Below, one piece after another: positions 20,571-49,908 of a stretch of DNA of 64,000 nt; the first letter of the stretch is position 1; each line of letters opens with the position of its first letter. The DNA is from Obrimoposthia wandeli (lineage: Eukaryota): the NCBI GenBank assembly GCA_977020255.1, contig CDROCS010000253.1, forward strand, positions 3,410,001-3,474,000. The letters run 5' to 3'. The position numbers were made by a program, and so were the translations under genes. The notes below the pieces were generated by a model. It ran no database searches, was not told where the DNA came from, and saw only the letters and a program-made list of their open reading frames with translations.

Positions 20571-20620
20571 AACATTAACTTAAGATAATCCATGTATCAG
20601 GCTTATCTTAAGTTAATATT
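20571..20620. repeat. 18-bp inverted repeat with 14-bp spacer downstream of recombinase
   Basis: AACATTAACTTAAGATAA-N14-TTATCTTAAGTTAATATT (17/18). Confidence 0.75.
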
Positions 20621-21200
20621 ATGCTAAGCTCGTTTATAATAGTGTGTCTACCTCCCAATATAAATTTACTTAAATAAAGCGTTTATTGCACGAGTTTTGA
20701 TCTATTTACTCATTAACTTTATTGATAAAAAGTATTAAAAACGTTCTACATGATATTGACCTTTAAAATAGGATTTAGTAACCAAGTAAAAATTATCCAT
20801 TTAGAGTAAGCAGTGTAGGGGCTTTATAATAAACACTTGGTAAATAGGTGACTTAATTTTTTGTCCTTAACCATCACTTTTTAGAGACTGTGTATAGGCA
20901 CATTATTTTATAACTTAAAAGCTAGGTTGAAAGGGCACTTGTGTTTGATTTCTGTACTCAAAGGTGACAATTAAATGTTAAATAGCCATTTAAATTTTTT
21001 ATATTCCGTATTAATAGCCTTATTTTAGTCAATTCAATGGTTATTACAGCTTGTTTAAATCATACTGTAATTAGCTGTAGAGCTTTAAATTCATAGCTTG
21101 TAGGTCAGTTAGATTAAATAGTAAACTGACGCTACGTGAATTCTGATTAACTTCGGTTGTCATTACCGGTAAAGAATCACGTAGCAGGCTGTTATTCTGC

Positions 21201-24483: not shown

Positions 24484-24556
24484 TTTGCATTCCTTTGCTA
24501 CTACGTTGTATTAATTTTATAACAACTTAATAAAAAATTAAGCCCTAGCTTTGAAG

Positions 24557-25813: not shown

Positions 25814-25862
25814 TAACCTTCACCACTAAAAATGCCATTAAAACTTTCTATTAGATACGTCA

Positions 25863-26486
25863 TTAAAAGAGTAACTCATCTTGTTGGCTTTTTTCTTGCT
25901 CAGGTAAACTGACTAACTCGGCATCGTTTAAAAATTCAATCAGTAAGTAAATTAAGTCAAAACGCGCCGTGGCATAATATCTACTGCTGCCTACATTTTT
26001 ACGAACAAAGTAATGCATTTCTTCAAGCTTTTGAAAAATCATTACTAATTGCTCTCGCGTTTCTGTTTTATTAGTCTTGAAAGGTTTTATCGACGTTAAT
26101 CGCCGTAATTGTTCGGTTAGCGTTTGATCATGCTCAAAGGGTTCGAATAACTCATTGATATTAAGTACTGATTTAGCACGAATAGGCAAATCTGCTTGCG
26201 TTGCCGTTAACAGTAAATCTAAAAACTCAACTAAAGGTCTAAAAGTACCACGCATTTCACTAAATAAAATACTGAGCTCGTGCTGGTTACTTTCGTCCAC
26301 TTGGTTAAAGGTACAGTAATAAGCATCGGCACTATCAAGATAAGTGAGTTTTCTATCTAAATTAGAGAGAAAATCATTCACTTTATCGTTATGACTTTCC
26401 GCTTTTAAGTACAAATATTCGGCTTCATAAGCCGTTTGACAAATAACAGCGCCACAGAGTAGCTTTTGAATACTTTGTTTAAACAT
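25863..26486 (-). CDS. MksE/JetB-like kite subunit
   Basis: 207 aa, translationally coupled to the SMC gene; C-terminal winged-helix-like segment. Confidence 0.7.
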   Translation of the reverse strand: MFKQSIQKLLCGAVICQTAYEAEYLYLKAESHNDKVNDFLSNLDRKLTYLDSADAYYCTFNQVDESNQHELSILFSEMRGTFRPLVEFLDLLLTATQADLPIRAKSVLNINELFEPFEHDQTLTEQLRRLTSIKPFKTNKTETREQLVMIFQKLEEMHYFVRKNVGSSRYYATARFDLIYLLIEFLNDAELVSLPEQEKSQQDELLF

Positions 26487-29400
26487 TAACTTAACTCCCC
26501 TGCTGTCTCTTTTTCAGGATCTTGTCCTGGCTCTTGTGGAGTAATGGTTGTCGTTTTATTACGCTGGGCTAACAATTCATCTAAGCGAGATTGTGGAATA
26601 TCGGCATGATAAATTTTATTGTCTTTCAATTTATAATGACGGTTATATAAGGACAAAATATGGCGATCTGTTGATGGTGAAGCAGATAACATGCTGATAT
26701 GGTTGTCATTAAACATTTTTAATAACAGGTCAATATTTTCAGCCGCGAGTTCACCTAATTCATCTACCGGCAAAATTATTTGACTAGCATGTTTGCTGTC
26801 ACCACGTAACATAGCTAACAAACCAGCAAATAAAGACAACATAGCTAAATAGGATAAACCTGTTGAGCTTACTTTTTTAAGTTGCTTGGCATTACGCGCA
26901 TGTTTTACTTGGCCTTTTTCGACAATAGTAAACTCTAAATCAAACAAGTTATTGTGCGCTAAGACAAAACCTTCATTAGGTAAATAACTGGCCAATTTCT
27001 GCATGGCGAACACTAAATCATCCGGTACTTCGCCAAGACCATCACGTAATTGATCTTTGTATAGCTCAAACACTTCGGCAAATTTTTGTAACGGTCCCCA
27101 GTAATCTAGCTCTTCTTGCTTCATTACTGTGGTGACATTAATATCGGCTAACGCTTCAAAATGCGCTAACGCAGTCACTTTGGTTGATAACAATTTACCA
27201 ATACGTTTTATATTACGACCAAAGTTTTCTATGTGCTGATAAAACTCGTTGATCATGGTGGCATTGACCGTCACCAGTTGATAAGTACTTTGCTGTTTTT
27301 GGTCGGCGCTATTTAATAACTCACTAATAGGCTCACGATATTTAAACAGTGCTTTTGCCCCCGAGTAATTATCATTGTCATGCAATAGCTTTTGCCAGTT
27401 TTCGAACAGTTCACTGCCAGAGTGTTCTTTTCTAAAACGTTCACTAAAAGTATTTAACTGACTCGCCAATCTTTTTTCAATGGCTTTAAACTGTTGATGA
27501 TAATCGTGGAAAAAACTCACGGTTAAATCCGCTTGGTTTGCTGGCTCTTGTTGACAAAGTTCACTAGTAATTGCTGACATTTCGCATAAGCGTTTATTAT
27601 CATTGAGTTGCACTAATAAATCATCAGTGGCTTGTTTTTCTTGATTATTCTTTCTAATTAACTGTTTTAGATCGTTAATGTTAGCCGATAACTCAATACG
27701 ACTATCTTCATAATTTGTTTCTATATTACGTTTGATAATTTTTCTGTTTTGGTTTTCTTCAGCCAACGCATCACGATGACAATAACGCTCGTTCATAAAA
27801 CTGTTATAGTCGCGCGCCTTTTGGGCAAACACTGAACATTGCTGTAAATCTTGTTCTAAGATCACTCGCTTGGCAATACGTTTGTCTACTTCACCTTCAG
27901 GATCAAGTTTTTCAATATCAATCGCTTGTTGTTTTTTAAGATCTGTTAAACGTTGTTTGGTATTACTTATCAGTGTTGATAATTGCTCAGACAATAGCGT
28001 TAACTGATTATCTCGGTCACTTTCAACCACCATGCATTTTTCTAACTTATCGTTAGTGAGTTCATGCAATTGCTCAGTTTTATTTTCTTCAAAGCTAAAT
28101 TGCTTTTTCTCAAGGACTTTTATTTGTTGAGTTAACGTTTGTAATTGTGCTTCTATTGTTTGGCGGTGCGCTTTTATCGCTAGCTGTTTTTTAACCACTA
28201 AGCTTTCTTGCTGCGTTTTCAATTGCCCTAACGTTAACTGTTGCTGATTTAAGCTTTGTGCTTGTTCAGTTACCGTGATTTTTAACTGACTAATTTCTTT
28301 GGCAATAAACTTTAACTGCTCATCAAGCTGAGAAATTTTATCTGTTTGCGTTTGTAATTTCGTTTCAATGACTTGGCGCTTTTCTCTCAGTTGCGCTTCG
28401 TCTAAAAATAAAGAATCGTCACAAGGCAGTTGCTGTAAGTCTATCGATAAACCATAAAGACTTGCCGGTGTTTTGTTGCTGTCATTATTACTGCTTTCTA
28501 ACCACTGCGGATTTAAATCAGTCCGCGATAATTGTTCGGTAGTAAGCAACCGACCAATAGTGTCTTGCCAGTTGGCGGCTTTAGGTTCATTAATAAGATA
28601 ATGATGTAAAGAGTCGGCTTGCGGCAGTAATTGTAATTCAACCTGATGATAATCTTGTTTTAACTGTTCAAGATAACGATTAACTTCACTACGTTGTGTC
28701 AATTGTTGGTTTTGCTGTTTCTCTAATTGATATTGCTGCTTTTGTAATTCAGAAGCTTGTTGCACCAACTGATTAGTATTTTGCTGAGCGTGTGTTAATG
28801 CCTGAATGTTATCTTCTATATCAGCAGATAATTGCAGCGGTATTATTGGTTGGCTAAGTTGTTGTTTAGCCGTATCTACTTGATATTGTATTTGTTGCTG
28901 ATCTTTTTGTAGTTTAAGCTCTTCTTGATGTAATTGGGCATTAAGTGCTTGTTGTTGCTGATGAAATACTTCATTAATACGTGATAATTTTTCATTAGAC
29001 TGAGTCGCTATCAGCGCTGATTTTTCTTTATTGCTGTTGATGCCTTTAAGCTTTTCTACTTCCATTTGTTGAATAAGCTTATCGAATTTTTGCCCTATTT
29101 TACTGATATTACCTTCAAAGGCATCAATAACGGCAATGACTTCATTCAACTCAGCTTGAATTTGTGGTGCTTGCTCGGCCTTAATTTGATAACTACTGGC
29201 ATCATCTTCATCAAAATTAAGTTTATCCGCATCAAGTAGATCGATTTTGCTTAAATCAGCTTCAATTTTAGCGATGAGGTCAAACTTTTCCTTGTGAAAC
29301 TGTTCCGTTAAATTAGCTAATTCACTGTCGAGTTTACTGCGTGTTTCAATACTGATTTTTTTAAGGGTATCTCTTTCTTGCTGTTTTATTTCAAGACGTG

Positions 29401-30250
29401 CTTGATGCGCGATCACTTCCGCGTGAAGATGTTGTAACTTATTGACTAAACTAGCAAAGACGCTAAAATCGTTTTGCCAAACAGATATTTTATCTGCTAC
29501 TTTTTTTATGGCGCGACTGGCTTGAATATCGGCAAGCCAGTTAGTAATATCTGCTTTATTTAAGCTAAGCTGTTCTTTTTCATCAAGGGTATCACGAGCA
29601 AGATGATCGCTGGCAATTGCAACTAACATGCGTTTAACTGCTTCAAAATCTAGATTTTTTTCTATGGTACCGTTAATCACTTTATCAATATGGGGGCATG
29701 CTTGCTCACTAAAAGAAAAGCGGTTTTGCAGTAATCTTATTTCTTTATGTTTACGACCACTACGCAAATTTTGAATAACTTGACGGTATTTATCTATACC
29801 TAAAAATTTGGAGCTTTCATTACCAATATTACGGTAATTTTTTTCTATTTCGTTGATAGTAAAAGGTTTAGCCTTATTACCTGTAGTACTGGCAATGAAA
29901 TACTGACTGTCGTAAGCGGCATCAATAAATTTAAAGTGCACACCTCTACCATCGCTGGTGGCTAACACTTGGCATTTTTGTCCGAAGGGTCTTGCGTATT
30001 CGTACACTAAAATACTGGATTCACGCGGTAAATAAAAATCGGCAAAGTTTTTTGCCTGGTCAACCTTACTAACAATATCGCTAGGTCGCATGCCATAAAA
30101 AAGTGGTAACAAACGCATTAACGAGGTTTTTCCTGCGCCGTTTGTCCCTTCAAGTTGAGTGTGACCCGTTAAATCCAGCTCATTTACTTGTCCTTGCCAA
30201 AAACTGTCGATAATAATAATGCGCAGCAGCGAATAGCCATGTTCTGCCAT
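26486..30250 (-). CDS. MksB/JetC-like SMC ATPase (DUF3584-like)
   Basis: Walker A GTNGAGKTS, long coiled coils, signature SSTGLSY, Walker B/D-loop ILPVDELGEL. Confidence 0.9.
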   Translation of the reverse strand: MAEHGYSLLRIIIIDSFWQGQVNELDLTGHTQLEGTNGAGKTSLMRLLPLFYGMRPSDIVSKVDQAKNFADFYLPRESSILVYEYARPFGQKCQVLATSDGRGVHFKFIDAAYDSQYFIASTTGNKAKPFTINEIEKNYRNIGNESSKFLGIDKYRQVIQNLRSGRKHKEIRLLQNRFSFSEQACPHIDKVINGTIEKNLDFEAVKRMLVAIASDHLARDTLDEKEQLSLNKADITNWLADIQASRAIKKVADKISVWQNDFSVFASLVNKLQHLHAEVIAHQARLEIKQQERDTLKKISIETRSKLDSELANLTEQFHKEKFDLIAKIEADLSKIDLLDADKLNFDEDDASSYQIKAEQAPQIQAELNEVIAVIDAFEGNISKIGQKFDKLIQQMEVEKLKGINSNKEKSALIATQSNEKLSRINEVFHQQQQALNAQLHQEELKLQKDQQQIQYQVDTAKQQLSQPIIPLQLSADIEDNIQALTHAQQNTNQLVQQASELQKQQYQLEKQQNQQLTQRSEVNRYLEQLKQDYHQVELQLLPQADSLHHYLINEPKAANWQDTIGRLLTTEQLSRTDLNPQWLESSNNDSNKTPASLYGLSIDLQQLPCDDSLFLDEAQLREKRQVIETKLQTQTDKISQLDEQLKFIAKEISQLKITVTEQAQSLNQQQLTLGQLKTQQESLVVKKQLAIKAHRQTIEAQLQTLTQQIKVLEKKQFSFEENKTEQLHELTNDKLEKCMVVESDRDNQLTLLSEQLSTLISNTKQRLTDLKKQQAIDIEKLDPEGEVDKRIAKRVILEQDLQQCSVFAQKARDYNSFMNERYCHRDALAEENQNRKIIKRNIETNYEDSRIELSANINDLKQLIRKNNQEKQATDDLLVQLNDNKRLCEMSAITSELCQQEPANQADLTVSFFHDYHQQFKAIEKRLASQLNTFSERFRKEHSGSELFENWQKLLHDNDNYSGAKALFKYREPISELLNSADQKQQSTYQLVTVNATMINEFYQHIENFGRNIKRIGKLLSTKVTALAHFEALADINVTTVMKQEELDYWGPLQKFAEVFELYKDQLRDGLGEVPDDLVFAMQKLASYLPNEGFVLAHNNLFDLEFTIVEKGQVKHARNAKQLKKVSSTGLSYLAMLSLFAGLLAMLRGDSKHASQIILPVDELGELAAENIDLLLKMFNDNHISMLSASPSTDRHILSLYNRHYKLKDNKIYHADIPQSRLDELLAQRNKTTTITPQEPGQDPEKETAGELS

Positions 30251-36968: not shown

Positions 36969-37045
36969 CGGGGTATAGCGCAGCTTGGTAGCGCGCGCGC
37001 CTGGGGGGCGTGAGGTCGACAGTTCGAATCTGTCTACTCCGACCA
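36969..37045 (+). tRNA. proL: tRNA-Pro (GGG)
   Basis: Full cloverleaf: acceptor CGGGGTA/TACTCCG, anticodon loop CTGGGGG, TTCGAAT T-loop, encoded CCA. Confidence 0.97.
37007..37038 (+). repeat. att core (tRNA 3' half), copy 1
   Basis: GGCGTGAGGTCGACAGTTCGAATCTGTCTACT, repeated at 42645-42676. Confidence 0.85.
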
Positions 37046-37057
37046 CATTAGTAAAAT

Positions 37058-37105
37058 AAAAAAGCCACTTAATTGTCATGCTAATGACGCTTAAGTGGCT
37101 TTTTT
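37058..37105 (+). terminator. Rho-independent terminator after tRNA
   Basis: AAAAAAGCCACTTAA...TTAAGTGGCTTTTTT. Confidence 0.85.
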
Positions 37106-37181
37106 ATATCTATTAAATCAATACAGCAGTAACCCCTTCCAATGTAATGCCCTACACAACGATTAAACCTCAAGTACGATA

Positions 37182-37934
37182 ATGAATATACCAATGAACA
37201 TAATAATAATAACGCTATTAATAACAACTTCAATCGCCACTCCTGTCCTAGCGAGCAACCAAGAGATACAATCTTTTAGTAAAGCTAAAAAGACCTTAGA
37301 AAATCAGGTTTACAACAAGCATCGCACCACACTTTATTGTGGTGCCATCTTTAACGCTAAGAAACAAGTAATCCCCCCACAAGGTTTTACTACTACTAAA
37401 TATGTTAAGCGAGCTAAAAGAATTGAATGGGAGCATGTTGTACCCGCAGAAAATTTCGGACGAACCTTTAGTGAATGGCGTAATGGCCATAAGCAATGTA
37501 TCAATAGTAAAGGCAAAGCGTTTAAAGGCCGAAGATGTGCAGAGAAAGTAAATACTAAGTATCGCTATATGCAGTCTGACATGTTTAACCTTTATCCTGC
37601 CGTGGGTGCGGTTAACGCGCTAAGAAGTAATTATACCTTTACCCTATTACCAGCTATAAAAAGTGACTTTGGTAGTTGCGCCATGAAAATAGACAGTCGT
37701 AAAGCTGAGCCGCCTAAAGCAGCGAGAGGTCAAATAGCTCGAACATATCTTTATATGAATGATGTTTATGAGCTATATAGCATGAGTAAATCACAAAACA
37801 AGCTGATGAATGCTTGGGATAGAATGTACCCGGTAGACGCTTGGGAGTGTGCCAGAACTAAGAAGATCACCCGCTTACAGAAAAGTGAGAACGATGTGGT
37901 CATGAGTCGATGCAAAGCTGGTGGTATTTGGTAA
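37182..37934 (+). CDS. endA: Extracellular endonuclease I (Dns/EndA family)
   Basis: Signal peptide; TLYCG, RIEWEHVVPA, DMFNLYPAVGAVNALRSNY, RGQIARTYLYM. Confidence 0.95.
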   Translation: MNIPMNIIIITLLITTSIATPVLASNQEIQSFSKAKKTLENQVYNKHRTTLYCGAIFNAKKQVIPPQGFTTTKYVKRAKRIEWEHVVPAENFGRTFSEWRNGHKQCINSKGKAFKGRRCAEKVNTKYRYMQSDMFNLYPAVGAVNALRSNYTFTLLPAIKSDFGSCAMKIDSRKAEPPKAARGQIARTYLYMNDVYELYSMSKSQNKLMNAWDRMYPVDAWECARTKKITRLQKSENDVVMSRCKAGGIW

Positions 37935-37997
37935 ACCTACCGGATGCTGTTTAGAATGTCATTTTTTGCGATAGAATAATAACTAATGCCCTAAAAC

Positions 37998-38118
37998 TGA
38001 CGGTTTTTTTGATCCAACTTAAAATCTGACAAGGGTGTAAATACCCATGCGTTTAACACAATTTGTAAGTAGATATCCTTCGTTATCAGGTTGTGGTTTT
38101 AAGTTACTTTTTAACATG
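37998..38118 (-). pseudogene. Internally deleted copy of the tus-like gene
   Basis: MLKSNLKPQPDNEGYLLT (cf. MLKNKFKAQPDNEGDLLT) joined to DNA matching the tus 3' region (TTAAAATCTGAcAAGGGTGTAAAT, cf. 42761-42784). Confidence 0.85.
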
Positions 38119-38140
38119 TGAATATAGACTTTTATCGGTA

Positions 38141-38160
38141 TACTGTTATTATGTACAGTG
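38141..38160. promoter_or_regulatory. LexA (SOS) box, copy before tus remnant
   Basis: TACTGTTATTATGTACAGTG = CTGT-N8-ACAG. Confidence 0.8.
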
Positions 38161-38622
38161 CAGCTACTATATACTGTACTCTTACTAAGTAAATGTAAAA
38201 GATAATGAATAAAATGCACGCGGTACGAGACTTGCTAAACTTTTCTTACTTGAATCATACTGCTCTTCTTGGTTTATCACAACAATCTTATAAAAAGTGA
38301 ATTTCTCGTTTGGCATCCATTTAATGAGGAGTTTGTATAAAGGCAGCATCCGCCATTTTTATCTTCCCATACGTTTTGGTGGGTAGACCTACTACTTAAC
38401 TTCTGAAGGACAAATTTTAACTTGGTCAAGAAGTTTTAGAATCATACCCACGTCAATTTTCTCATAACCATCTAATACTTCTGCGGAACTATTTCATCCC
38501 ATTCAATAGTTTATACGGCTAGGCTATTACCCTAAATTGATTTGCAGAATGCAAAAAACGAGAAAAAACAATACAAATAAATAACAAAACGATTAAAATC
38601 AACAGCTTATTTGTTATTGCTA

Positions 38623-38639
38623 TTGGTATACTACTTGCA
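38623..38639 (+). promoter_or_regulatory. Sigma-54 (-24/-12) promoter
   Basis: TTGGTATACTACTTGCA = GG-N10-GC, about 50 bp before the large ORF. Confidence 0.65.
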
Positions 38640-38675
38640 AACCTAACTATAAGAACAAAAATATTTACGTAATAG

Positions 38676-41600
38676 TTGGAGAAAAAGATGAAAAATAATA
38701 ATGCCTATATTCGTAGTTACTATTTTGAAAATAATTATGTTAGCTCATTATCCGATGACGTTATTGGTTTAGGCGTAAAGCCTCCTCGTCGTTTAGTGAA
38801 AATAATAAATTCACTCCTGTTTATTTCAGTGATTTTTATTTTGCCTAGTGTGCAAGCCATCACACAACCTTTGTTAGATTCAGACCTAAATAACCAGTCA
38901 CTTTATGCCAGTGGCTACATTACGATGGGTGCGCGCACAACAGTTGGTGGTAATATTCAAAGTGCTACTGCGACTACACTCGCCGCCGATGCAATCGTAG
39001 GGGGTAATGTTGAGGCTGGAACCGCAGTAACTCTTGGCGCTACTGCAGCGGTTGTTGGCTATATTGAAGCGGGATCTACTGCAACATTAGGTGCAGCTGC
39101 AATTATTGATGGTTCTATTTTGGCTGGAACCACGGCTACCATAGGTGCTGGTGTTCAAATTAATGGTGAACTTATAGCCGGAACCACAGTAACAATTGAT
39201 GCAACGGTGGAAGTAGTGGGCGCTGTTTTAGCTGGAACTACTGTAACGGTTGGTGCTGGTTCAATTTTTCATGGTGATGTTGATGCCGGAACCACCACAA
39301 CCATAGGTGCTGGTGTTCAAATTAATGGGGACCTTACCGCGAACTCTCTGCTGCTACCTCCTTCTCCTCCCTTAGTAACTAATCAAGAAGCTTTACTTAC
39401 ATCGGTACAAACAACGCTGAAGGCTTTGGGAACAGGAACAGAACTCGTTTCTATTACTTTTGGGACAAACAATGAAACACTCGAAGCTGGTATCTATAGC
39501 ACTATAGATTATCTGGCGATTGCCGGAGGAAAAACCCTCACGCTTGATGGCAAGGGTGTCGACGGTACATGGATTTTTAATATTGCTAACTACCTAAGTT
39601 TTGCTATTGATGCAAAAGTAGTATTGTTAAATGTAACGGATAACAGCACCGTTATCTGGAATGTCCTAGGCGACAAAACTGGCTCCACAGGGTATACCCA
39701 ACTAGGCGCAGGCGCTGAAACCACAGGTTTTATTTTTGCTAAAGGCTTCGTCCAGACCGGTGCTAATACGGTGATAGAAGGTATAGGTAATGATTGTGGA
39801 GGGGCTTATTCAGCGACAAATTACATCGAATTTGGCGCAGATAGCATAATAGGACAGCCGGGGTGTACTAACGGTATGACCTTGTCAGTAAGCGAAGCTA
39901 TCACTGGCAAACCGTTTGCGACTTGCCCCACAGAAGCCTTTTTAATACAAGATAGCTTAGCGACGTTATATGGGGTTCAATTAGCCACGGGACAATACCT
40001 GCAACTATCAAACTCCATGGGAACGACTAATGACATTAATGCAATGGGCTTTAATACTCACGATCAATTTCTTTATGCTTGGAGTAATGAATTCGGGCAA
40101 CCCGTTCGCATTAATAGTGACTATCAAGTTACACCATTGACCACTTCAGGATTACCAGATGTATCATTTGATGTTGGTGATATTGCCATTGATAGCAATG
40201 TATATTACGTCTATAAGCCAGGTGCTTCCTACGGTTTATATGCGATATCCTTAGATTCATCGACCGCCAACTATTTGATAGCAGAATTAATTATAGATGG
40301 CAGCAGCTTAGATATAGATATCTTTGATATGGCCTTTCATCCATCTAATGGCTTTGCATACAGTGTTGATAGCCAAGGAAACCTATATCGTATTGATGTT
40401 AATAATGGCAGTGCTGAATTGATTAATAATATTGGTGAGATGGGCATTTTTGGTGCTGTTTATTTTGATGTTGATGAAAACCTTTATATTAGCCGTAACA
40501 ACGATGGTAAAATATTTAAAATAAATACCAATGAAGCCAATTCACTCGCCAATTTATTTGCTTATGGCCCAAGCTCAAGTGATAACGATGGTGCACGTTG
40601 TGCATTAGCCCCCGTTATTGCGGCAGATGCAGCAACAATAGATTTTGGGGATGCTCCTGCCTCATATGGTAGCCTCGCTGAAGATAATGGTGCTCGCCAT
40701 AGTACAGAAAATAACGCTATTTTCATGGGATCTGGTGTTGACGCCGAATTTGATAGCTTCCAATTCCCGCTAAGTGATGACGCAACAGACGGGAATGATG
40801 ATGAAGACGGTGTGGCTTTTGTCACCGGTATTGAAGTCGGTAATTCCGCAGTACTGCAACTCGTTGCATCATCATCAGCCTTTGTTAATGCATGGATAGA
40901 TTTTGACGGCAATGGTGCATTCGGACCTGATGAGAAAATTATTGATGCTCTGCAAGTAGTTCAAGGTAATAATACGATCTCTTATAACGTACCTGAATGG
41001 GCTGAGGCGGGCAGCACATGGACTCGATTTAGAATAAGTAGTACTAATGAGTTAGGTCCAACGGGTGGTGTTAGTGATGGTGAAGTGGAAGATCAGCAGG
41101 TTGATATTACAGAACAAAATGTCAGTGTACATTATTATCCTAGTGCTTCTGAGTGGGCAACCATTGCTTTTGAAGATAATTGGCCATCAACAGGCGACTA
41201 TGATTTTAATGATTTAGTCATGAATTATCGTATCAGTGAATACAGACTCGACGGTGAAGTAATTCGGATTAAACTACAAGGTCAAATAGCAGCTGCTGGC
41301 GCCTCTTACCATAACGGTTTTGCCTTTCATTTACCCGGTATTACGCGAGATACTATTGATGAAAACGCTATACGCTACACCATCAATGATCTGCCACAAA
41401 ACACCTCACCTTTAGAATCAGGACGTGATCAGGCAATAGCAATTATCACCGATGATGTGTGGAACTTTGTCAGTGCCGGTGAGAACTGTCTATATCACCG
41501 AAGTGAGTCGGGTTGTGGTTCTAAAATTCAAATGCGTTTTTCTATGACTTTACCTATGGCCAATGCGATCCCGGTTCAAGAGATGCCAGAGTTCCCATAC

Positions 41601-41951
41601 GACCCGTTTTTATTTTCTGCAGGGGGGTATCATGGCGAAGCATTTGACACGCCACCAGGCAGAGCATACGAAATACATTTACCCAATAAAGCACCGACAG
41701 AAGCTTTTAGAATCGACTTCTTTGGTCGAGAAGAAGATAGTAGCCAGCCAGAAAATCAGCGTTACTTTGTGAATGATAATGGTATGCCATGGGCGATCAA
41801 TCTTGGTGTTGAGTGGCAGTATCCTTTGGAGTACATCGATGTAATTGAGGGGTATCCATTATTTCCCAGTTTTATTTCCAATCAAGGGCTTATAGATGCC
41901 GACTGGTACACACTTGAAAATGCTAACATAAACAATATTTTTTCTGATTAA
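38676..41951 (+). CDS. Large secreted protein: expanded DUF3494/ice-binding-like beta-solenoid, DUF6923-like propeller, GEVED and LruC domains
   Basis: 8x18-aa coils; LTLDGKG...WIFNIANYL..AKVVLLN...VIWNV (DUF3494-like); DFGDAP; GEVED; AFEDNWP..GDYDFNDLV (LruC). True start probably ATG 38688 or later. Confidence 0.85.
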   Translation: MEKKMKNNNAYIRSYYFENNYVSSLSDDVIGLGVKPPRRLVKIINSLLFISVIFILPSVQAITQPLLDSDLNNQSLYASGYITMGARTTVGGNIQSATATTLAADAIVGGNVEAGTAVTLGATAAVVGYIEAGSTATLGAAAIIDGSILAGTTATIGAGVQINGELIAGTTVTIDATVEVVGAVLAGTTVTVGAGSIFHGDVDAGTTTTIGAGVQINGDLTANSLLLPPSPPLVTNQEALLTSVQTTLKALGTGTELVSITFGTNNETLEAGIYSTIDYLAIAGGKTLTLDGKGVDGTWIFNIANYLSFAIDAKVVLLNVTDNSTVIWNVLGDKTGSTGYTQLGAGAETTGFIFAKGFVQTGANTVIEGIGNDCGGAYSATNYIEFGADSIIGQPGCTNGMTLSVSEAITGKPFATCPTEAFLIQDSLATLYGVQLATGQYLQLSNSMGTTNDINAMGFNTHDQFLYAWSNEFGQPVRINSDYQVTPLTTSGLPDVSFDVGDIAIDSNVYYVYKPGASYGLYAISLDSSTANYLIAELIIDGSSLDIDIFDMAFHPSNGFAYSVDSQGNLYRIDVNNGSAELINNIGEMGIFGAVYFDVDENLYISRNNDGKIFKINTNEANSLANLFAYGPSSSDNDGARCALAPVIAADAATIDFGDAPASYGSLAEDNGARHSTENNAIFMGSGVDAEFDSFQFPLSDDATDGNDDEDGVAFVTGIEVGNSAVLQLVASSSAFVNAWIDFDGNGAFGPDEKIIDALQVVQGNNTISYNVPEWAEAGSTWTRFRISSTNELGPTGGVSDGEVEDQQVDITEQNVSVHYYPSASEWATIAFEDNWPSTGDYDFNDLVMNYRISEYRLDGEVIRIKLQGQIAAAGASYHNGFAFHLPGITRDTIDENAIRYTINDLPQNTSPLESGRDQAIAIITDDVWNFVSAGENCLYHRSESGCGSKIQMRFSMTLPMANAIPVQEMPEFPYDPFLFSAGGYHGEAFDTPPGRAYEIHLPNKAPTEAFRIDFFGREEDSSQPENQRYFVNDNGMPWAINLGVEWQYPLEYIDVIEGYPLFPSFISNQGLIDADWYTLENANINNIFSD
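38907..39338 (+). repeat. Eight tandem 54-bp (18-aa) coding repeats
   Basis: Consensus AGTTxTxGAxxxxxGxxx; 29 bp identical at 39138 and 39300. Confidence 0.9.
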
Positions 41952-41962
41952 AGAGGTGACGT

Positions 41963-42478
41963 ATGAATAAGCTATATAGTTTTATTTTATTGAGTACTTT
42001 GTTAACAGCGTGTGGCGGTGGTTCAGAAAGTAGCATACAAGAACCGACAGTAGATGAAAGTCCGCCAAGTAATGTTTTATTAGATCCAGTTCAAAGCCAA
42101 CCAGCGGTAACTGAATTTAGGTTCGAGGAGAATAAACCTTTGGAAACTGTGGCTGTTATAGAAAGTGCAGCAAAAACAAGCAGTGAGATAGACGTACCTG
42201 ATGGCTTTTCACTGAGTAGTGAGCGCACGTTTAACCTAAAGATTCTTCGGATAGAAGATGATAACCAAGCAGCCTATTTATCGCTGTGCAGTGATTATCA
42301 GCACCATAATGACGGCAGTTATACTATTAATTATGATAGCTGTTTACTCAGAACTTCATTGAATGATATTAATTACGAGTCGTTAGTTACTGTTACCAAT
42401 GACACCGAGGGCTTAGTTGTCGCACTGTGGTTTATGGATGTAACTAAAAAGCCCATCATCACGAGTTGGCGTTTTTAA
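41963..42478 (+). CDS. Lipoprotein partner of the LruC-domain protein
   Basis: Lipobox LLTAC-GGG; 11 bp downstream of the large ORF. Confidence 0.8.
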   Translation: MNKLYSFILLSTLLTACGGGSESSIQEPTVDESPPSNVLLDPVQSQPAVTEFRFEENKPLETVAVIESAAKTSSEIDVPDGFSLSSERTFNLKILRIEDDNQAAYLSLCSDYQHHNDGSYTINYDSCLLRTSLNDINYESLVTVTNDTEGLVVALWFMDVTKKPIITSWRF

Positions 42479-42644
42479 TGTCTAAATTATAAAAGTAAAT
42501 TAGAGTATCGATAGCCAAATATTAACAGTTAAATTAGTGTTACGATTTAAAAATATTCAAATGTTATACCCACTTATTTTCAATATAAAATAACCCTAAA
42601 CTTATGAAGTTTAAGGTTATTATATTCACCTGAATGAGACTGGT

Positions 42645-42676
42645 GGCGTGAGGGCGACAGTTCGAATCTGTCTACT
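42645..42676 (+). repeat. att core (tRNA 3' half), copy 2
   Basis: 31/32 identical to 37007-37038. Confidence 0.85.
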
Positions 42677-43607
42677 TCACCCCCACTAACTGTAAAAATT
42701 TATCTAACATCTCTTTATTACTTTTAATAAAAGGTTTTTTTTGATCTTTATCGCCGACATTAAAATCTGATAAGGGTGTAAATTTCGGTACCGCATTGTT
42801 TTCCTGCCCCATTAATATAAATGGAATGGTGGCATTATGCTTGTTACGTTTCTTCTCTCCATCCTTAATTAAATTAAACTCTATTGTTGGCAATAACCTA
42901 AATTGTTTTAACTTCTGTATTTTCTTATACTGTCCAGAGGTTATCTTGCTAATAGTGATATTTAACCGCGCTTTCCACTCGGTAGCACTGAACTCTATTG
43001 GTGGTACACTTTTCTTTTTTTCTACATAAAGCACCGCATCATCAAGCGAATACATTTGAGGCACCGGTCGACTAACCCAATTAAACCAAACGTTGTTTAC
43101 GTGGTCTGTTTTTATTTGAATTTTTCGGTAGAGCTGCTCTGTCATAACACCAGAAAAAGCGCGATGAATAAACTCATGACGTTGATGTTTATCTCTGTTG
43201 TGACGAATGGTGTTAGCCAAGCCATCTTTTAAGGTATTAATAGACGTTACCAGTGCCAAGACAGTCTCTTTCTCTTCATTGACAATGACAAAACCAGGTA
43301 AGCGGTTAACAAACATTGTAGAACTGGTTAGTGGCGCGTAAAAATCTTTCCACGCGTTTAACACCGTTTGTAATTCGGTCCATTGCGTCAAGGCGTTAAC
43401 AGATAAGTGTTTCACGCCAGCAACGATACAGTTTTTTTCTTCCTCTTTAGCTATTCGTTCAATCTCATAGCCAACAAAATAGGGGTTTTGTTTACTTATC
43501 ATCTCGATCAATAACGTGGTTTGAGTAACAAGCTTACTCATTAACTGAGTTACGGTAAGTAGATCTCCTTCGTTATCAGGTTGTGCTTTAAATTTATTTT
43601 TTAACAT
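42672..43607 (-). CDS. tus: Tus-like DNA replication terminus site-binding protein
   Basis: SSTMFVNRLPG, RHEFIHRAFSGVMTEQLYRKI, VWFNWVSR, EWKARL and HNATIPFI align with recalled E. coli Tus blocks; 311 aa versus 309. Confidence 0.8.
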   Translation of the reverse strand: MLKNKFKAQPDNEGDLLTVTQLMSKLVTQTTLLIEMISKQNPYFVGYEIERIAKEEEKNCIVAGVKHLSVNALTQWTELQTVLNAWKDFYAPLTSSTMFVNRLPGFVIVNEEKETVLALVTSINTLKDGLANTIRHNRDKHQRHEFIHRAFSGVMTEQLYRKIQIKTDHVNNVWFNWVSRPVPQMYSLDDAVLYVEKKKSVPPIEFSATEWKARLNITISKITSGQYKKIQKLKQFRLLPTIEFNLIKDGEKKRNKHNATIPFILMGQENNAVPKFTPLSDFNVGDKDQKKPFIKSNKEMLDKFLQLVGVK

Positions 43608-43630
43608 GAAAATATATCCTTTTACTGGGA

Positions 43631-43650
43631 TACTGTTATTATATACAGTA
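43631..43650. promoter_or_regulatory. LexA (SOS) box upstream of tus
   Basis: TACTGTTATTATATACAGTA, 24 bp upstream of the ATG. Confidence 0.88.
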
Positions 43651-43974
43651 TTATTACTAAGTAAATGTAAAAGATAGTGAATAAAATACGTGCCCTACTG
43701 TCTTGCCAAACTTTTCTTGCTTGAATGACACTGTTCTTCTTGGTTTATCACAACAATTTTATAAATAAAGAATTTCTCGTTTGGTAACTACTTAATGAGG
43801 TGTTTGTATAAAGGCAGCGCCCACCATTTTTACCTTTCCATATACCATGGTGGGTAGACCTACTATTTAAAGCAATTAATATCTTCGGGGCCATAATCAA
43901 AATACGGCTAAATTCTCTATTGAGTGTTTCTGATTTTTACAATCAAACAATAACAACTAAAAAAGACAACGTAA

Positions 43975-45114
43975 CTATCTTATATGACGTTGAAAAATAT
44001 GAAAGTCTTCGAGTGCTTTCGTTGCAGAAAATACAGTCCAACCATGCTGTTTGACAAGTATTTCGTTTCTCATATCAATGAGTACAGCAACTTTTTTACG
44101 TGGCCAACACAAATCGAATGATACTGTATTACGGTCATACTGAACCGCTACACCTAACTCCCCTACTGGTACCCTAGAGCTTTGGCATTTAAGAATAAGC
44201 CCTTCTAACGCCGTATCGGCACACTCTATCAACTGAGGATAGGTTGTATTATCAAACTTATGCTGCTCTCTTCGAAACCGGTTTATGGTAATTACGTCAA
44301 CAGGTTTTATATACAAATGCCCGTGATGCGGCTGCTTCTTGTGACAATCGCAACAGAGTGCACGCAAATTATTGCTGTCGTTATTTTTTTTGACTCCATC
44401 AATATGATGTACATGTAGCAATTTTTTTTCAGAATCGAGATCAACACCACATTGTTGGCAAATATAGTTAACTTCATTTTTTATTCTGGATGAAATAGCG
44501 GGCCAGTCTGACGAGTAAGTAACTGAGTCTTCATTTATTTTAGAGTCAGGCAAGCTTTTAAAGTAAGAACTGTAAGTTTCAAAAAATTTAACAAAACTAA
44601 AGCTTTCAAAAATAATGTTTCTATCTGGCTTTGTTTTAAGCGCATAACCTTGATAATTAAGGATACGTAAACAGTTCATGCAAGTCCCTAAATGAGCTTT
44701 ATCCTTTAGTTCTTTATGTGTTTCAGGGTCGACACCATAAACGGGTACATACCCACTCATTTCATTGGTTACCTGATAGCGTGGGAAACGCCCTGTTTCT
44801 CGCATTAACTGTAAAGTGTTACATTCAGCTATATGTATGCGTCGCCCTTGTTTTCCATCCTGAATGACATGCCGAATATCATCACCTTGATCCGGAATAT
44901 AAAGCATAACCTGACGCCCTTTATAACTAAGAACACCGTTACTATTTTCAATTTCGCCTATATCAATATCTTTACCTAACTCTTGTCCATCTCTAAGAGC
45001 GGCATCGATAGGATCAATGTCCTTAAAGACAAACCCTAACTCAAAATCAGCCTCTTCTGCCCCCATCAGTTGAACAGCGTGGCGAAGTTGACCAAAGTTA
45101 ACTGTTAACTTCAT
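43975..45114 (-). CDS. zorE: Zorya type II HNH nuclease ZorE
   Basis: CQQCG...LHVHHIDGVKKNN...NLRALCCDCH; follows zorB with GTGA/ATGA-type overlap. Confidence 0.8.
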   Translation of the reverse strand: MKLTVNFGQLRHAVQLMGAEEADFELGFVFKDIDPIDAALRDGQELGKDIDIGEIENSNGVLSYKGRQVMLYIPDQGDDIRHVIQDGKQGRRIHIAECNTLQLMRETGRFPRYQVTNEMSGYVPVYGVDPETHKELKDKAHLGTCMNCLRILNYQGYALKTKPDRNIIFESFSFVKFFETYSSYFKSLPDSKINEDSVTYSSDWPAISSRIKNEVNYICQQCGVDLDSEKKLLHVHHIDGVKKNNDSNNLRALCCDCHKKQPHHGHLYIKPVDVITINRFRREQHKFDNTTYPQLIECADTALEGLILKCQSSRVPVGELGVAVQYDRNTVSFDLCWPRKKVAVLIDMRNEILVKQHGWTVFSATKALEDFHIFQRHIR

Positions 45115-45815
45115 TCTTCAGCTTCCAAAATCCGTTTTATTTGAATATCAGCATTAGTGATCGCACGAAAGGATACCCGTCGTGATTTTTCAGCATCTTC
45201 GGTGCCAGCTTCATTCAGTATTAACCGTGACGATGAAAAGCCAACAGCGGCAATGTTACGCTTGATCCAATCAGTTTCACCTGGCACCAAACTGTATAAA
45301 TATGACAACACAGAACGAGTTCTACCTTGCGACAAACGCATATTATTAAAATATGCCTCACTGTCTGTACTAGTTAGGTTCCATGCACTACTGGTATGCC
45401 CTTCAATCCTAACTTCATTTAATGATTCACGGAACGGCTTAAGGACAGTTAAGTACCTTGGGAAAAAATCATTCAAAATATTGGTAAAGGTTGGCTTTAG
45501 TGCAATTTCACCATTATCAAAAAGTACATCTGGTGAATTAAAATTAAACGCAAGGGTATCTTTATCAATTGCTGCACCCCATGTAGGCAAGTCGTTCTTA
45601 AACTCTTCATCTAAGGCATTATAAATAGCAACTTGATTTTCTTGAAACGCTATCGCCACATTTTTAATTTTTTCATTTTCTTTTATCGTATGACGCATAA
45701 AAACAATAGCAATAAACAAAAAAACCATCATCAAACCAGCCATAAGATCAGAAATTGTTAACCAATGCTCTCCTGACTCTTCATGGCTTTTGCTACTCCC
45801 AAATAATGCACTCAT
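45111..45815 (-). CDS. zorB: Zorya ZorB (MotB/OmpA-like)
   Basis: WLTISDLMAGLMMVF TM with Asp; IEGHTSS, LSQGR, SRRVSF. Confidence 0.9.
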   Translation of the reverse strand: MSALFGSSKSHEESGEHWLTISDLMAGLMMVFLFIAIVFMRHTIKENEKIKNVAIAFQENQVAIYNALDEEFKNDLPTWGAAIDKDTLAFNFNSPDVLFDNGEIALKPTFTNILNDFFPRYLTVLKPFRESLNEVRIEGHTSSAWNLTSTDSEAYFNNMRLSQGRTRSVLSYLYSLVPGETDWIKRNIAAVGFSSSRLILNEAGTEDAEKSRRVSFRAITNADIQIKRILEAEE

Positions 45816-47587
45816 TAGGCACTTACCTGTTCTTTAACTATTTGCTGCATAGCGAGGGTTAAGTTTTTATAATCTCGAGTGAATTGGCCGGCAATTTGCG
45901 CCAGCGAAGTACCCATTTCATTCATAACTCGGTTGATTTCTTGCTGCATTGCTTGATCGATTATACCAACTTGTTTTTCGACAGCTTCGCCAGTTAACCC
46001 TACTTGTTGTTTTATTTTTTCTTCCATGGCATCAAAAGTGCGCTGTGCTTGGCTCACCTGTTGTTTCGCGGCTTCTTCCATCATGGTTTTCATTTGATCT
46101 TGCAGTTGTTCGCTAGACTTAACAAAGGTATCTCTCACTTCTTTAGTATCTATTGTAAGATTCTGATTAGCGTCCTTCATTGTTGTATTCATTATCTTAG
46201 CGTCGTCAACTAGCTTAGCGATCATGTCACTCATGTTGTTGTTTAGATCAGTTACTGCAACGTCTAAAGTTTTCTGAATAACCTCTGTCTGACTTTGTAA
46301 GTAATCAGAGGTAGTTTGTAAGCTAGCATTAGTACGGGCTGAATTGTCTGTGAATTCATTACTCGCCATATCAATGTTTTTACCAATAATTTCAGAGCTT
46401 TCGATCAATTTATCCGCAACAACATTAACGCTTTTTTCTGATTTTTTAACAAAATTTTCAATTAAATTATCGGCTGCCGTTAATGTTTCTTTGATAAATA
46501 CATCTGATTCAGCTACAACTTTTTCATAATGAGCACTAGCCACGCCAACTGCATTGGTAATATCTGTTACCGTATTTTCAACTTGTTGACGTATTTCTGG
46601 CACCGCTTCAACCGCACGATCACGCATATCTTTAAAGGCTTCTAAATGGCTTTCTAACTCACTTATTTGATGTTGATTAACTTCCATAACAACTTGTAAG
46701 TCATTCATGGTTTGAGGAATAACCTTCGACTGCTCGCTGATGTGTGCTACCGAGTTTTCTGTCAACGTAATAGCTTGAACACCATGTTCATATTGAAGGT
46801 GCATCTGCTCTAGTTGTAGTTTATAATTTTCTTGCCAATCAACAAGTTTAATAACAGCAGCATTAAGTTGCTTGAAATTTTCGCCAAACTGCTCAGTTAG
46901 ATTATTATTGAAATCGGTTATTACCTGCTTCAATGCTTCTATTACTTGCTCCGTTGCTGACTTGGACAAGGTATCAGCAAAGTCTTGCAGTTTTATCCAT
47001 AACTTGTCCGAAAACAGTGCAAAATTATCGAATTGTTTAGCTGATAGTTCTTCGGTTAACTTTTTATTAAGCTTGGCATTATCGTTCATATCGCTGCGCA
47101 TTAGTTTTAGTAAACCAAACAACGTTGACTCATCATTACCCGCAATTGCTTCTTTCAGTGCTTGTGTTTCTTTAACTTGGCTTTGCATTGCCGATAAAAT
47201 TTGCTCTGGCGAAGCGCTAGTCACTTCATCAGGCTGTGATTTCGGCTTTAATAACGGCGTTGTTAAAAGGCTCTTAAACAACAAAGAAGAAAGCATACCA
47301 GCTAGACTAGTAATAAATGCCGTTTTAAGACCATCTAATAGCATGGTAATACTGTCATCAATTTTTGTATGATCAAAATCGAGCAAGCCAATAACAATGC
47401 CAACAAAAGTACCAAAAATACCTAGGGTCGTTAACAACGTTGGGGTGTAGTGAACAAAGTCTCCTGCTTTATTTAGCTTAGATAAAACGCTAGAGCCGAT
47501 GAACACAAGGATCATAATGAAAATAATAAAACTAGTAACTGTTTCAGGGTTAAGTCCTCTTAAAAGTCCTTCTAAAAAACCGCTCAT
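45815..47587 (-). CDS. zorA: Zorya ZorA (MotA-like with long helical tail)
   Basis: TLGIFGTFVGI, GLKTAFITSLAG, FGENFKQLN.AV, about 450-aa helical tail. Confidence 0.9.
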   Translation of the reverse strand: MSGFLEGLLRGLNPETVTSFIIFIMILVFIGSSVLSKLNKAGDFVHYTPTLLTTLGIFGTFVGIVIGLLDFDHTKIDDSITMLLDGLKTAFITSLAGMLSSLLFKSLLTTPLLKPKSQPDEVTSASPEQILSAMQSQVKETQALKEAIAGNDESTLFGLLKLMRSDMNDNAKLNKKLTEELSAKQFDNFALFSDKLWIKLQDFADTLSKSATEQVIEALKQVITDFNNNLTEQFGENFKQLNAAVIKLVDWQENYKLQLEQMHLQYEHGVQAITLTENSVAHISEQSKVIPQTMNDLQVVMEVNQHQISELESHLEAFKDMRDRAVEAVPEIRQQVENTVTDITNAVGVASAHYEKVVAESDVFIKETLTAADNLIENFVKKSEKSVNVVADKLIESSEIIGKNIDMASNEFTDNSARTNASLQTTSDYLQSQTEVIQKTLDVAVTDLNNNMSDMIAKLVDDAKIMNTTMKDANQNLTIDTKEVRDTFVKSSEQLQDQMKTMMEEAAKQQVSQAQRTFDAMEEKIKQQVGLTGEAVEKQVGIIDQAMQQEINRVMNEMGTSLAQIAGQFTRDYKNLTLAMQQIVKEQVSA

Positions 47588-47636
47588 CTATACTTCCTTT
47601 CTGTCTTTAATATAATAATTTAGGTAAATTCTGTGC

Positions 47637-47738
47637 TTATTTAGCTAATGCGTTTTCAACAACGGCATCTGCGAGGTGTAATTGGGTGGTTTGTGCATCA
47701 GCTAGGCGTACTTTGAGTTGTTCACATAAGGCCATTAG
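47637..47738 (-). pseudogene. hsdS: HsdS C-terminal remnant
   Basis: LMALCEQLKVRLADAQTTQLHLADAVVENALAK*. Confidence 0.8.
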
Positions 47739-47895
47739 GTAAACGAACGATAGTGTGTAAGTTACATTCTTCGGTTAACAGCTTTTTGATTTTGGTTTTA
47801 ACACCTTCACCAAATAAAGTACCGTCGGGCAGTACTACCGCTGCACGGCCGCCATTTCTGTCTGTTGTTGGTGACGCCAGCACTTCGATAAGATT
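47731..47895 (-). pseudogene. hsdM: HsdM internal remnant
   Basis: [41 protein letters not shown]. Confidence 0.88.
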
Positions 47896-48253
47896 CAAGT
47901 TGAGCCGGATTAGTCTTGTCATGAAAAATAAAACCATCGCCGTTTGAAGCAAAGATAAAAGGCACTTCGAGCAAACGGGCATAATCAAGCCCTTGTTGCA
48001 TACCCTTGCCTATTTCGTGTTTATTCGCCTTAGCTTCAATTACCGCTAGTGGCATATTCGGTTTATGGTAAAGCACGATATCAGCAGATTTAACCGTGGT
48101 ACGCATGGCTATAGGGCCGCGTACAATCACTTTACCATCACGTAGCTTCACTTCTTGACGTATTTGTTTCATCAAATCCCAACCGGCACTTTGTACCGCG
48201 GGCATGATGAATTTGGTGATTATATCGGTTTCGGAGAACTTCTTTTTGTCCAT
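47896..48253 (-). pseudogene. hsdR: HsdR (EcoEI-like) N-terminal remnant
   Basis: [44 protein letters not shown]. Confidence 0.88.
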
Positions 48254-48536
48254 GCTTTTTCCTTGCTGCTACTGCTTGTCCATTATGCAGCGTACAAAGT
48301 GCGATAATTGTTAAAGGTTGTCAACAGAATTAGATAAAAAGTCAAGGTAGATCATGTTACTAGGAATTTTTAATATTGTAGCAAGTCATTATTTGACAAT
48401 AAATGGCTCAGTGTTTGTATCCATCTGCGGTCAGCTAAATATTGCCATGCTGAGCTGTCATTAATTGTTTTTATCTCCTATTTGAATGGTAACGGGTATA
48501 TTAGTTAATCTCACGGCTTTAAATGCTTTAACGTTT

Positions 48537-49610
48537 TTAAGCGTCAACTCGCTCTACAATAGCAATGCCTTGTCTATAACCTAAACCACCATTGCCATGT
48601 ATTAAGCCAAGCCTTTCTGGACCATCACATAAGCGATGATGCATTAGCACAAGCGCATTAAGCGCTGGATTATTCCATGCAGCTTTGGCCAAATTCATGC
48701 CGCCGGTTATGGTAATACTATGTTCAGCGAGAAAGTCCGGAATATCCTCTAAAACCTCAACCAAACCACTGACTAATAAAAAGGCCATTGGCACAACCGG
48801 ATAGCAAGTATAAGTTTCTAATAAAGCATCACCACGTTTGAACAGGTGAACAAAGTCGATATCAGCTTCCTCACAGGCTTGTTGATAAGCCTGTTGTAAA
48901 TGTTCATATAGGGAAATATCTTTTAAAAAATCTCGGCCATCTCCATCAAGACGGCTCAGTCCAACGGCTTTCACCTTTAACCATTGGCTTTTATCAACGC
49001 CTAGCTGCTCAGCGATATCGGCACGTGTTAACAATAATCGACCTGAAAAATCTACCATAGGATTTGCACAGTCAATCCCTCTAAACAGGTCTGTTATCGG
49101 CTTGTGCCATCGTAAATCGGGTAATAATTCTGGGGTAAAGCTATCTGACAAGGCGTTACGAAAACTAATTTGGTAATTTTCAAACAGTGCACTAGAAAAT
49201 TCTTTAAATTGTTGTGCTGTAATAGTGTGATTTTCACTAAAGGCGCGCGCTAAATCGTTATAAGCTTGCGTTAATGGATAACTTTGACCATAAACGGCCA
49301 TTTTACTTAACCGCTCTTCTCGGCTATAACCCGTTTTGATATGATCTTCACCACTGATTACCACCGCAGCTTCACCATTTTCTATTAATTTCTTTGCTTC
49401 AGCCAACGCTTCAATTGGAGCGCAACCACTTCTAAAGTGATGCTCTTGCTCAGGGCTATGCCAATCAGTCTTTAAAGGCTCTATAACTAAATATTTAGGC
49501 GTAATACCGCGTTGAAGTAATTGTGACTCGAGCAATAAAACCTGATCAAGACTACCTACTTCATCTTGTTTTTTAGCTGCGCCAATAATAAATGCTGATG
49601 GAGTTTTCAC
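48537..49610 (-). CDS. Divergent thiolase-like (acetyl-CoA acetyltransferase-like) protein
   Basis: LETYTCYP, ITGGMNL..AAWNN, GLIHGNGG resemble the C-terminal thiolase-like domain. Confidence 0.55.
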   Translation of the reverse strand: MKTPSAFIIGAAKKQDEVGSLDQVLLLESQLLQRGITPKYLVIEPLKTDWHSPEQEHHFRSGCAPIEALAEAKKLIENGEAAVVISGEDHIKTGYSREERLSKMAVYGQSYPLTQAYNDLARAFSENHTITAQQFKEFSSALFENYQISFRNALSDSFTPELLPDLRWHKPITDLFRGIDCANPMVDFSGRLLLTRADIAEQLGVDKSQWLKVKAVGLSRLDGDGRDFLKDISLYEHLQQAYQQACEEADIDFVHLFKRGDALLETYTCYPVVPMAFLLVSGLVEVLEDIPDFLAEHSITITGGMNLAKAAWNNPALNALVLMHHRLCDGPERLGLIHGNGGLGYRQGIAIVERVDA

Positions 49611-49908
49611 AAGTAATTTAATCCAGTAAAATGATAGATACTAACCTTATGCTATTTAAACAAAATTAAAAACCTAAAAGCAATCTTAATGGTATTCACT
49701 TCATTTACATCAACACCTAACTGTAATTGAGTCAAAAACGCCTCTAAAATAGGTAACGCGTAACTATTTAATTTGTTGTTTTTAAAGTTATTATCGTATA
49801 TAGCATGTGAATCAGAGCGTAAGTTATAATTTTATTTATAATACACTAAGTACTTAGGCGTATGATAGCTAGCGAAAAATTATAACTGCTTTAGTTGTTC
49901 TGATGTGC

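Follow-up and report, generated by a model that had tools for sequence, protein, structure and literature searches.

A 64,000-nucleotide (nt) stretch of contig CDROCS010000253.1 (Obrimoposthia wandeli assembly GCA_977020255.1, positions 3,410,001 to 3,474,000), designated here as the window, carries an intact tus gene behind a LexA operator. The gene codes for a predicted fork-arrest protein of 311 amino acids (aa). It is probably a resident chromosomal gene of a Colwellia lineage, SOS-boxed and descended from a plasmid, and not mobile defence cargo. A preliminary description of this DNA had seen in it an SOS-controlled Tus-like protein serving a mobile element at the edge of a defence island. 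The prediction of SOS control is well grounded because the operator is strong, overlaps the promoter, and is conserved in orthologues; the mobile-element and defence role is not retained.

Tus protein

Pfam PF05472 (Ter) matches the 311-aa open reading frame (ORF) with E 6.6e-28 over profile positions 4-279 of 296. A sequence profile of this protein and 13 relatives, run against PDB, recognized E. coli Tus structures (1ECR, E 3.3e-11). The AlphaFold2 model has a mean predicted local distance difference test (pLDDT) score of 72.4, and its comparison with PDB in Foldseek (E ≤ 0.001) returned E. coli Tus chains only (n = 4; 4XR2, 1ECR, 4XR0, and 4XR1), with E 2e-14 and template modelling (TM) scores of 0.60-0.62 over about 290 columns. 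Profile and fold comparisons thus both lead to E. coli Tus, and the ORF, already taken for an intact Tus homologue in the preliminary description, is a Tus-family protein by sequence and fold. Identity with E. coli Tus in the structural alignment is about 16%.

In the hidden Markov model (HMM) alignment, two of the three residues examined in the C(6) lock pocket have invariant equivalents in the clade: H148 and G153 correspond to E. coli His144 and Gly149. E. coli Ile79 is outside the aligned stretch. The protein ends in ...FLQLVGVK, and ...LQLVGVK/R is kept across the chromosomal orthologues.

LexA operator and promoter

The near-consensus LexA box reported upstream of tus is present (Table 1), with its CTGT-N8-ACAG core at 43633-43648. 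The -10 hexamer TATAAT of the predicted promoter is embedded within this canonical operator, so LexA should hold tus low. At 15 of 16 positions the operator agrees with the box given for the lexA upstream region of Shewanella piezotolerans WP3 (PMC4471891). Two CTGT-N8-ACAG sites occur in the 64 kb, with a chance expectation of about 0.76; the second, at 38143-38158, lies beside a decayed tus copy, where the preliminary description had correctly placed it.

The orthologues at the chromosomal loci L001-L009, L019, and L020 have both arms intact, as ACTGTATATAAT[AT]ACAGT, at equal distance to the ATG. Mean column identity over about 350 nt upstream of chromosomal tus is 49%, whereas the LexA arms are perfect. 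Because the arms are intact in all orthologues within DNA conserved so poorly, the box before chromosomal tus is, on this comparison, under selection.

Another CTGT-N8-ACAG site was observed between ndpA (NA37) and an amidohydrolase gene in L003 (14569-14584) and L008 (10569-10584); it is missing from the equivalent place in the window.

LexA boxes before tus genes of distant plasmids

Thirteen tus loci, whose proteins share 20-29% identity with window Tus, were sampled from PLSDB; the records are plasmids, chromids of Pseudoalteromonas, and a single Aeromonas caviae record of chromosome size. Five of the 13 carry CTGT-N8-ACAG 25-38 nt upstream of the start codon, its only occurrence in each locus of about 3 kb. 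These are Glaciecola pGLAAG01, A. macleodii pTE101a and QZ9-9 (one family), Salinimonas iocasae plas12, and A. stellipolaris pASTE61-200, all megaplasmid loci with Tus 22-29% identical to the window protein. No box was found before tus in the sampled plasmids of Vibrio, Photobacterium, Shewanella, Klebsiella, and Marinobacter, nor in the sampled Pseudoalteromonas chromids and the Aeromonas record. Because four independent tus families share the operator at the same place, the prediction that LexA control of tus is functional, and recurs within Alteromonadales, has strong support. Literature searches found no paper on LexA-controlled tus, nor tus in any LexA regulon.

The palindrome could also be vestigial or serve another regulator, with tus expressed constitutively or autoregulated as in E. 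coli. The Rep3-linked sister clade described below keeps TATAAT without the arms, which could then be drift around the -10, and the Tus-type candidate site further upstream might autoregulate. Such a reading is improbable, as the arms are perfect in all chromosomal orthologues in spite of the divergent surroundings, four unrelated plasmid tus families have canonical boxes in the same place, and chance predicts less than one such site in 64 kb.

Fixed position of tus on the chromosome

A word-index protein search found 16 Tus relatives with 56-92% identity, and all those with a named source are from Colwellia. Eleven chromosomal loci were fetched (L001-L009, L019, and L020); L007 and L009 come from the same contigs as L002 and L001, so that nine contigs are distinct, and L003-L005 are near-identical copies out of three samples. 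Their Tus proteins are 72-92% identical to that of the window, and the shared backbone order is bio operon, AhpC, variable slot, tus, tRNA-Pro, DUF3413, and NdpA.

Loci L003-L006 and L008 (C. ponticola, in L008 the cultivable strain OISW-25; Tus 72-73% identical to window Tus) have the order bioBFCD (contig permitting), hicB, AhpC, a PAS/GAF/EAL protein, tus, about 100 nt, and tRNA-Pro. The intact tRNA-Pro, which stands without a repeat in L003 and L008, is followed by DUF3413, DUF1414, and NdpA as far as the contigs reach. In L002 and L020 the order is tus, endonuclease I, tRNA-Pro, and DUF3413. The same stop-side flank with DUF3413 was found on eight of the nine distinct contigs (in L006, limited by its contig end, the adjoining tRNA-Pro). 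On that side L001 shows an integrase island behind a tRNA-Pro fragment, and the contig of L019 ends at tus. Beyond a slot of differing content, AhpC and/or bio genes were found in L003-L006, L008, and L019. The slot upstream of tus differs per genome and holds a PAS/GAF/EAL protein, type I restriction-modification (R-M) genes with AbiEii, FG-GAP/PD40 proteins, a thiolase, or, in the window, Zorya.

The preliminary description had placed tus directly downstream of zorABE, which is borne out: PADLOC names ZorA2, ZorB2, and ZorE2 there, and the system is complete without tus. Because tus sits between two insertion hot spots, its link with Zorya is positional only, and the Zorya system, a remnant of hsdR, and a tRNA fragment all adjoin it for the same reason.

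The tRNA fragment is the basis of the claim that the tus stop codon lies inside an att repeat. The 21-mer CGACAGTTCGAATCTGTCTAC is present exactly twice, in tRNA-Pro(GGG) and in its 3' fragment, and the stop codon (42672-42674) does overlap the last 4 nt of this repeat. The stop is native and not made by att, because the C-terminus is conserved in orthologues without a repeat there; the fragment is brought against it by loss of the spacer of about 100 nt. In L001, where an integrase island is inserted in tRNA-Pro, the tRNA fragment lies about 100 nt beyond tus, beside the island, and tus stays on the chromosomal side of this 3' fragment (attR).

Downstream of the tRNA fragment, the window has a 171-aa ORF, a 1091-aa ORF, the decayed tus, endonuclease I, and tRNA-Pro. 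The decayed copy (copy A) directly follows endonuclease I, which is the native tus position in L002 and L020, and its remnant, with the box and the upstream region, is about 85% identical to the intact copy B. An independent Logan assembly (run X1) covers 37950-43900 with its contigs, the junction of tRNA fragment and tus included. We infer that the tandem copies arose by exchange of the locus between Colwellia lineages with later decay of the redundant copy, and that the second copy would not be a transposing backbone.

The preliminary description had instead made tus and its box the backbone of an element targeting tRNA-Pro, which would use Tus for replication of its excised circle or, alongside Zorya, as an accessory against phages or plasmids. 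Two tandem tus copies, each near tRNA-Pro-derived sequence, agree with this, as do the adjoining defence genes (Zorya II and the hsdR fragment in the window, type I R-M and AbiEii in L001), the plasmid-borne deeper ancestry of tus, and the exchange of its allele between lineages. It is nevertheless very doubtful. No recombinase domain was found in ORFs of at least 100 aa across 37046-49900, and no integrase, excisionase, or replication gene is present across the same interval. Neither att repeat, integrase, nor Zorya was found at the tus locus in L002-L006, L008, and L020, where the same gene and box occupy the fixed position beside an intact tRNA-Pro. Genomes that have neither the repeat nor defence genes there thus carry tus with its box. 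The integrase island of L001 leaves tus outside, the segment between the repeats in the window holds endonuclease I, a native chromosomal neighbour, and PADLOC gave no match for tus. As to linkage, the result is one that the preliminary description had itself named as refuting: the orthologues are chromosomal genes unlinked to islands.

Rep3-linked sister clade

Loci L010-L018 form a sister clade, with Tus 55-61% identical to that of the window and the C-terminus LVGVLA. Upstream of its tus genes the TATAAT core is kept and the LexA arms are absent. In these replicons parA and the gene for a 443-aa partner are followed by ATGACACnTTnTTATG iterons over about 1 kb, then by rep3, tus, and the gene for a tyrosine recombinase. 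The chromosomal tus looks plasmid-derived in these comparisons, because the sister clade lacking the LexA box adjoins a Rep3 iteron replicon.

L011 has at least 10 iteron-like repeats at 4324-5390 upstream of the Rep3 initiator gene, with parA and the partner gene nearby. This replicon is an undescribed Colwellia plasmid or chromid encoding its own Tus.

Candidate Ter motif

The preliminary description saw no convincing Ter site near tus; a candidate has now been found about 245 nt upstream. The 20-nt asymmetric motif AWAGTRKGTCTACCYNCC is, besides the promoter, the sole non-coding block conserved across the chromosomal and Rep3-linked loci. Each chromosomal tus has one copy about 190-250 nt upstream, on the same strand as the gene, and L011, L017, and L018 have convergent inverted pairs of it between rep3 and tus, with about 130-230 nt between the sites. 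In the window, three sites (S1-S3) score 30-32 bits with the position weight matrix (PWM), versus 6.7 bits for the best background score; the S1 copy is itself among the sequences used to build the matrix. The motif is the likely DNA target of Colwellia Tus, and so a candidate Ter site, as far as its conservation and placement indicate. A scan of 14 tus loci outside the clade (the 13 PLSDB loci and E. coli MG1655) gave weak matches, the best with 10.9 bits in A. macleodii.

Two other origins of the motif were considered and rejected. Some copies end in ...CCCACCA, as a tRNA would, but the CCA end is not conserved and the T-loop is absent. The Rep3 iterons have a different sequence, and the motif follows tus into chromosomes without rep3.

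Site S1, convergent with the other two, was rejected as a conserved trap partner. It is strain-specific, because the motif is absent from 19 of 19 orthologous loci around the neighbouring transporter gene and L021, a relative with 93% identity, lacks the 417-nt insert (20500-20916) that contains it. The insert carries a 50-nt palindrome (20571-20620), has no PLSDB match, and adjoins a gene for a 422-aa tyrosine recombinase. This recombinase gave no PADLOC match and is unrelated to the one adjacent to plasmid tus.

Other features of the region

Coordinates are collected in Table 1. The hsdR remnant covers about 120 N-terminal residues (profile positions 5-124 of 807); an older R-M system apparently gave way to Zorya in the slot, which in L001 contains full type I R-M and AbiEii. 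Beyond the remnant follow a 357-aa ORF with no function assigned, AhpC, HicB, and the bio operon. A 69-nt scrap upstream of tus in L019 (5920-5988) shares 84% identity with the zorE 3' end (window 44035-44107); it is a trace of Zorya turnover in a slot where other genes are found now. In run X2 (organism B, a related strain), the sequence directly beyond the motif (window 43868) resembles the T-arm and acceptor part of a tRNA, GAAACAGATCGAATCTGTCAACTCCCACTA; in some genomes an att-like tRNA remnant may therefore delimit the variable slot as well.

A cluster of four genes at 23572-30250 (-) codes for DUF3584 (1254 aa, SMC-like), a 207-aa ORF, a 418-aa ORF, and DUF7281. The cluster is conserved and, in the window, stands a few kb away from tus; the DUF3584 gene is likewise near tus in relatives whose contigs extend that far. 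PADLOC gave no matches for the cluster, and it may be a condensin-like (Mks-type) system.

Table 1. Positions of tus, its regulatory elements, and neighbouring features in the window
Feature	Position	Strand	Remarks
Candidate Ter site S1	20637..20658	+	Convergent with S2 and S3; PWM 30.6 bits
tRNA-Pro(GGG)	36969..37045	+	Conserved chromosomal neighbour; island integration site
Decayed tus (copy A)	38019..38110	-	Start codon and about 17 codons; two short internal/C-terminal scraps
LexA operator of decayed copy	38141..38160	-	
Candidate Ter site S2 (of decayed copy)	38376..38397	-	PWM 30.7 bits
Terminator-like hairpin 3' of tus	42589..42621	-	
3' fragment of tRNA-Pro(GGG), 34 nt	42642..42675	+	Abuts tus stop codon
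tus (copy B)	42672..43607	-	Intact ORF, 311 aa; predicted Tus-family fork-arrest protein
LexA operator TACTGTATATAATAACAGTA (tus-strand reading)	43631..43650	-	23 nt before ATG
Sigma-70-like promoter TTTACT-16 nt-TATAAT	43638..43665	-	Consensus scan, 10/12 matches
Candidate Ter site S3 (AAATAGTAGGTCTACCCACCAT)	43847..43868	-	About 245 nt upstream of tus; PWM 32 bits
Zorya type II zorA-zorB-zorE	43975..47587	-	In variable slot upstream of tus
zorE	43975-45114	-	PADLOC ZorE2, E 2e-136
zorB	45111-45815	-	PADLOC ZorB2, E 9e-100
zorA	45815-47587	-	PADLOC ZorA2, E 3e-248
Type I HsdR N-terminal fragment	47807-48253	-	148-aa ORF; PADLOC REase_I, E 8e-60

Discussion

As a resident gene, tus would descend from a Rep3 iteron plasmid or chromid and would now be fixed between tRNA-Pro(GGG) and a hypervariable slot. 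Its own sigma-70 promoter would drive it, LexA would repress it in undamaged cells, and RecA-stimulated cleavage of LexA upon DNA damage would induce it. Tus would then bind the motif upstream of its gene and arrest forks in a polar way. By analogy with E. coli Tus/Ter and with work on over-replication, the most likely role would be fork confinement at the time of SOS: fork-barrier capacity would rise on demand, and the extra Tus would confine origin-independent, recombination-dependent forks. The reason for keeping Tus/Ter traps is debated, the leading ideas being containment of over-replication that arises from fork fusion, R-loops, and recombination; much of such over-replication rises after DNA damage.

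Several observations weigh against a resident, SOS-switched terminator gene. The lock-pocket Phe140 of E. coli Tus is replaced by an invariant His in the Colwellia clade in the HMM alignment, and Arg198 falls in an insertion, without an aligned counterpart. The clade was found at four loci among 185,579 GTDB species representatives, all Colwellia, and tus is therefore patchy within the genus. DNA of copy B is closer to L001, L002, L019, and L020, at 88-91% identity, but left of tRNA-Pro the backbone has more in common with L003 and L008 (80% versus 72%); judged from these identities, the tus allele moves between lineages and the locus is mosaic. The motif and E. coli TerB are weakly alike, about equally in either orientation (AGTAKGT... 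collinear, G.T..A.CTA reversed), and the polarity of the motif is thus not fixed. With the polarity of E. coli sites, the convergent arrangement would keep forks out and not trap them; opposite polarity would make traps of the plasmid pairs and of the window sites. As to markers of a replication terminus, the window has no E. coli-type dif (25-mer, up to three mismatches) and no matS site, and its guanine-cytosine (GC) skew tracks gene orientation and is uninformative on the terminus. Octamers like FtsK-orienting polar sequences (KOPS) occur only twice.

The altered Phe140 and Arg198 positions and the lack of terminus markers in the window, together with the single conserved motif copy per chromosomal locus and the hypervariability of both tus flanks, would also suit a Tus fold co-opted for other SOS-linked DNA binding, as a roadblock or a recombination hot-spot factor at the variable slot. 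We regard this as unlikely, since the fold is conserved over the full length, the equivalents of His144 and Gly149 are invariant, and the plasmid sister loci have the convergent site pair between rep3 and tus in the classic layout of a plasmid terminus.

A resident tus predicted to be under LexA can be set beside the known systems. E. coli Tus/TerB has the same Pfam family, the same fold, and the same single-gene unit, and a short asymmetric site (in Colwellia, a candidate) lies upstream of tus on the coding strand in both. In E. coli MG1655, TerB precedes the ATG by 11 nt and a LexA box was not found within 400 nt, so the earlier statement that E. coli tus is outside the LexA regulon holds; Colwellia has instead a LexA operator and a different candidate site much further upstream. 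The gammaproteobacterial LexA regulon shares the CTGT-N8-ACAG operator over the -10, but the literature searches found tus in none of its described regulons. R6K has a plasmid terminus with an inverted Ter layout, and R6K/R1-type plasmids depend on host Tus. The Rep3-linked motif pairs of Colwellia resemble such termini as inverted site pairs near the origin; the replicons differ from them in encoding their own Tus, and in the motif sequence.

Galli et al. 2019 (PMC6549158) recognized Enterobacterales, the Pseudoalteromonas chromid, and Aeromonadales as groups with resident tus, the rest being mobile. Colwellia is not among these three, and its chromosomal clade has the conserved context by which they were defined, so that it would be a further domestication of tus; congruence with the species tree is partly contradicted by the mosaic locus. 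In the Pseudoalteromonas chromid, tus adjoins ori/repA (PMC6549158, PMC7858055), and the layout of parAB, iterons, rep, and tus is the same as in the sister clade L010-L018. LexA control of tus is mentioned in neither paper.

A broader proposal is put forward tentatively, as possible rather than probable. Tus may be a member of the SOS regulon in marine Alteromonadales, on the Colwellia chromosome and independently on megaplasmids of Alteromonas, Glaciecola, and Salinimonas, with the damage-inducible barrier acting as a replication checkpoint or containing origin-independent replication. The replacement in Colwellia of a promoter-proximal Tus site, of the kind seen in Rep3 plasmids, by a LexA operator would then mark the domestication of a plasmid terminator.

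The LexA-boxed tus is a new regulatory variant of a known protein family, and the broader pattern is worth testing. One candidate new defence system is removed, its link with Zorya being positional. The motif offers a candidate Ter sequence for a Tus clade where the E. coli consensus fails, and Colwellia is likely the fourth case of a plasmid tus domesticated on a chromosome, one whose plasmid relatives can still be compared with it. If LexA-wired tus has truly arisen more than once, on different replicons, this would be evidence from nature that SOS is when cells most need fork barriers, and the tus of Colwellia would be a simple system for testing that need.

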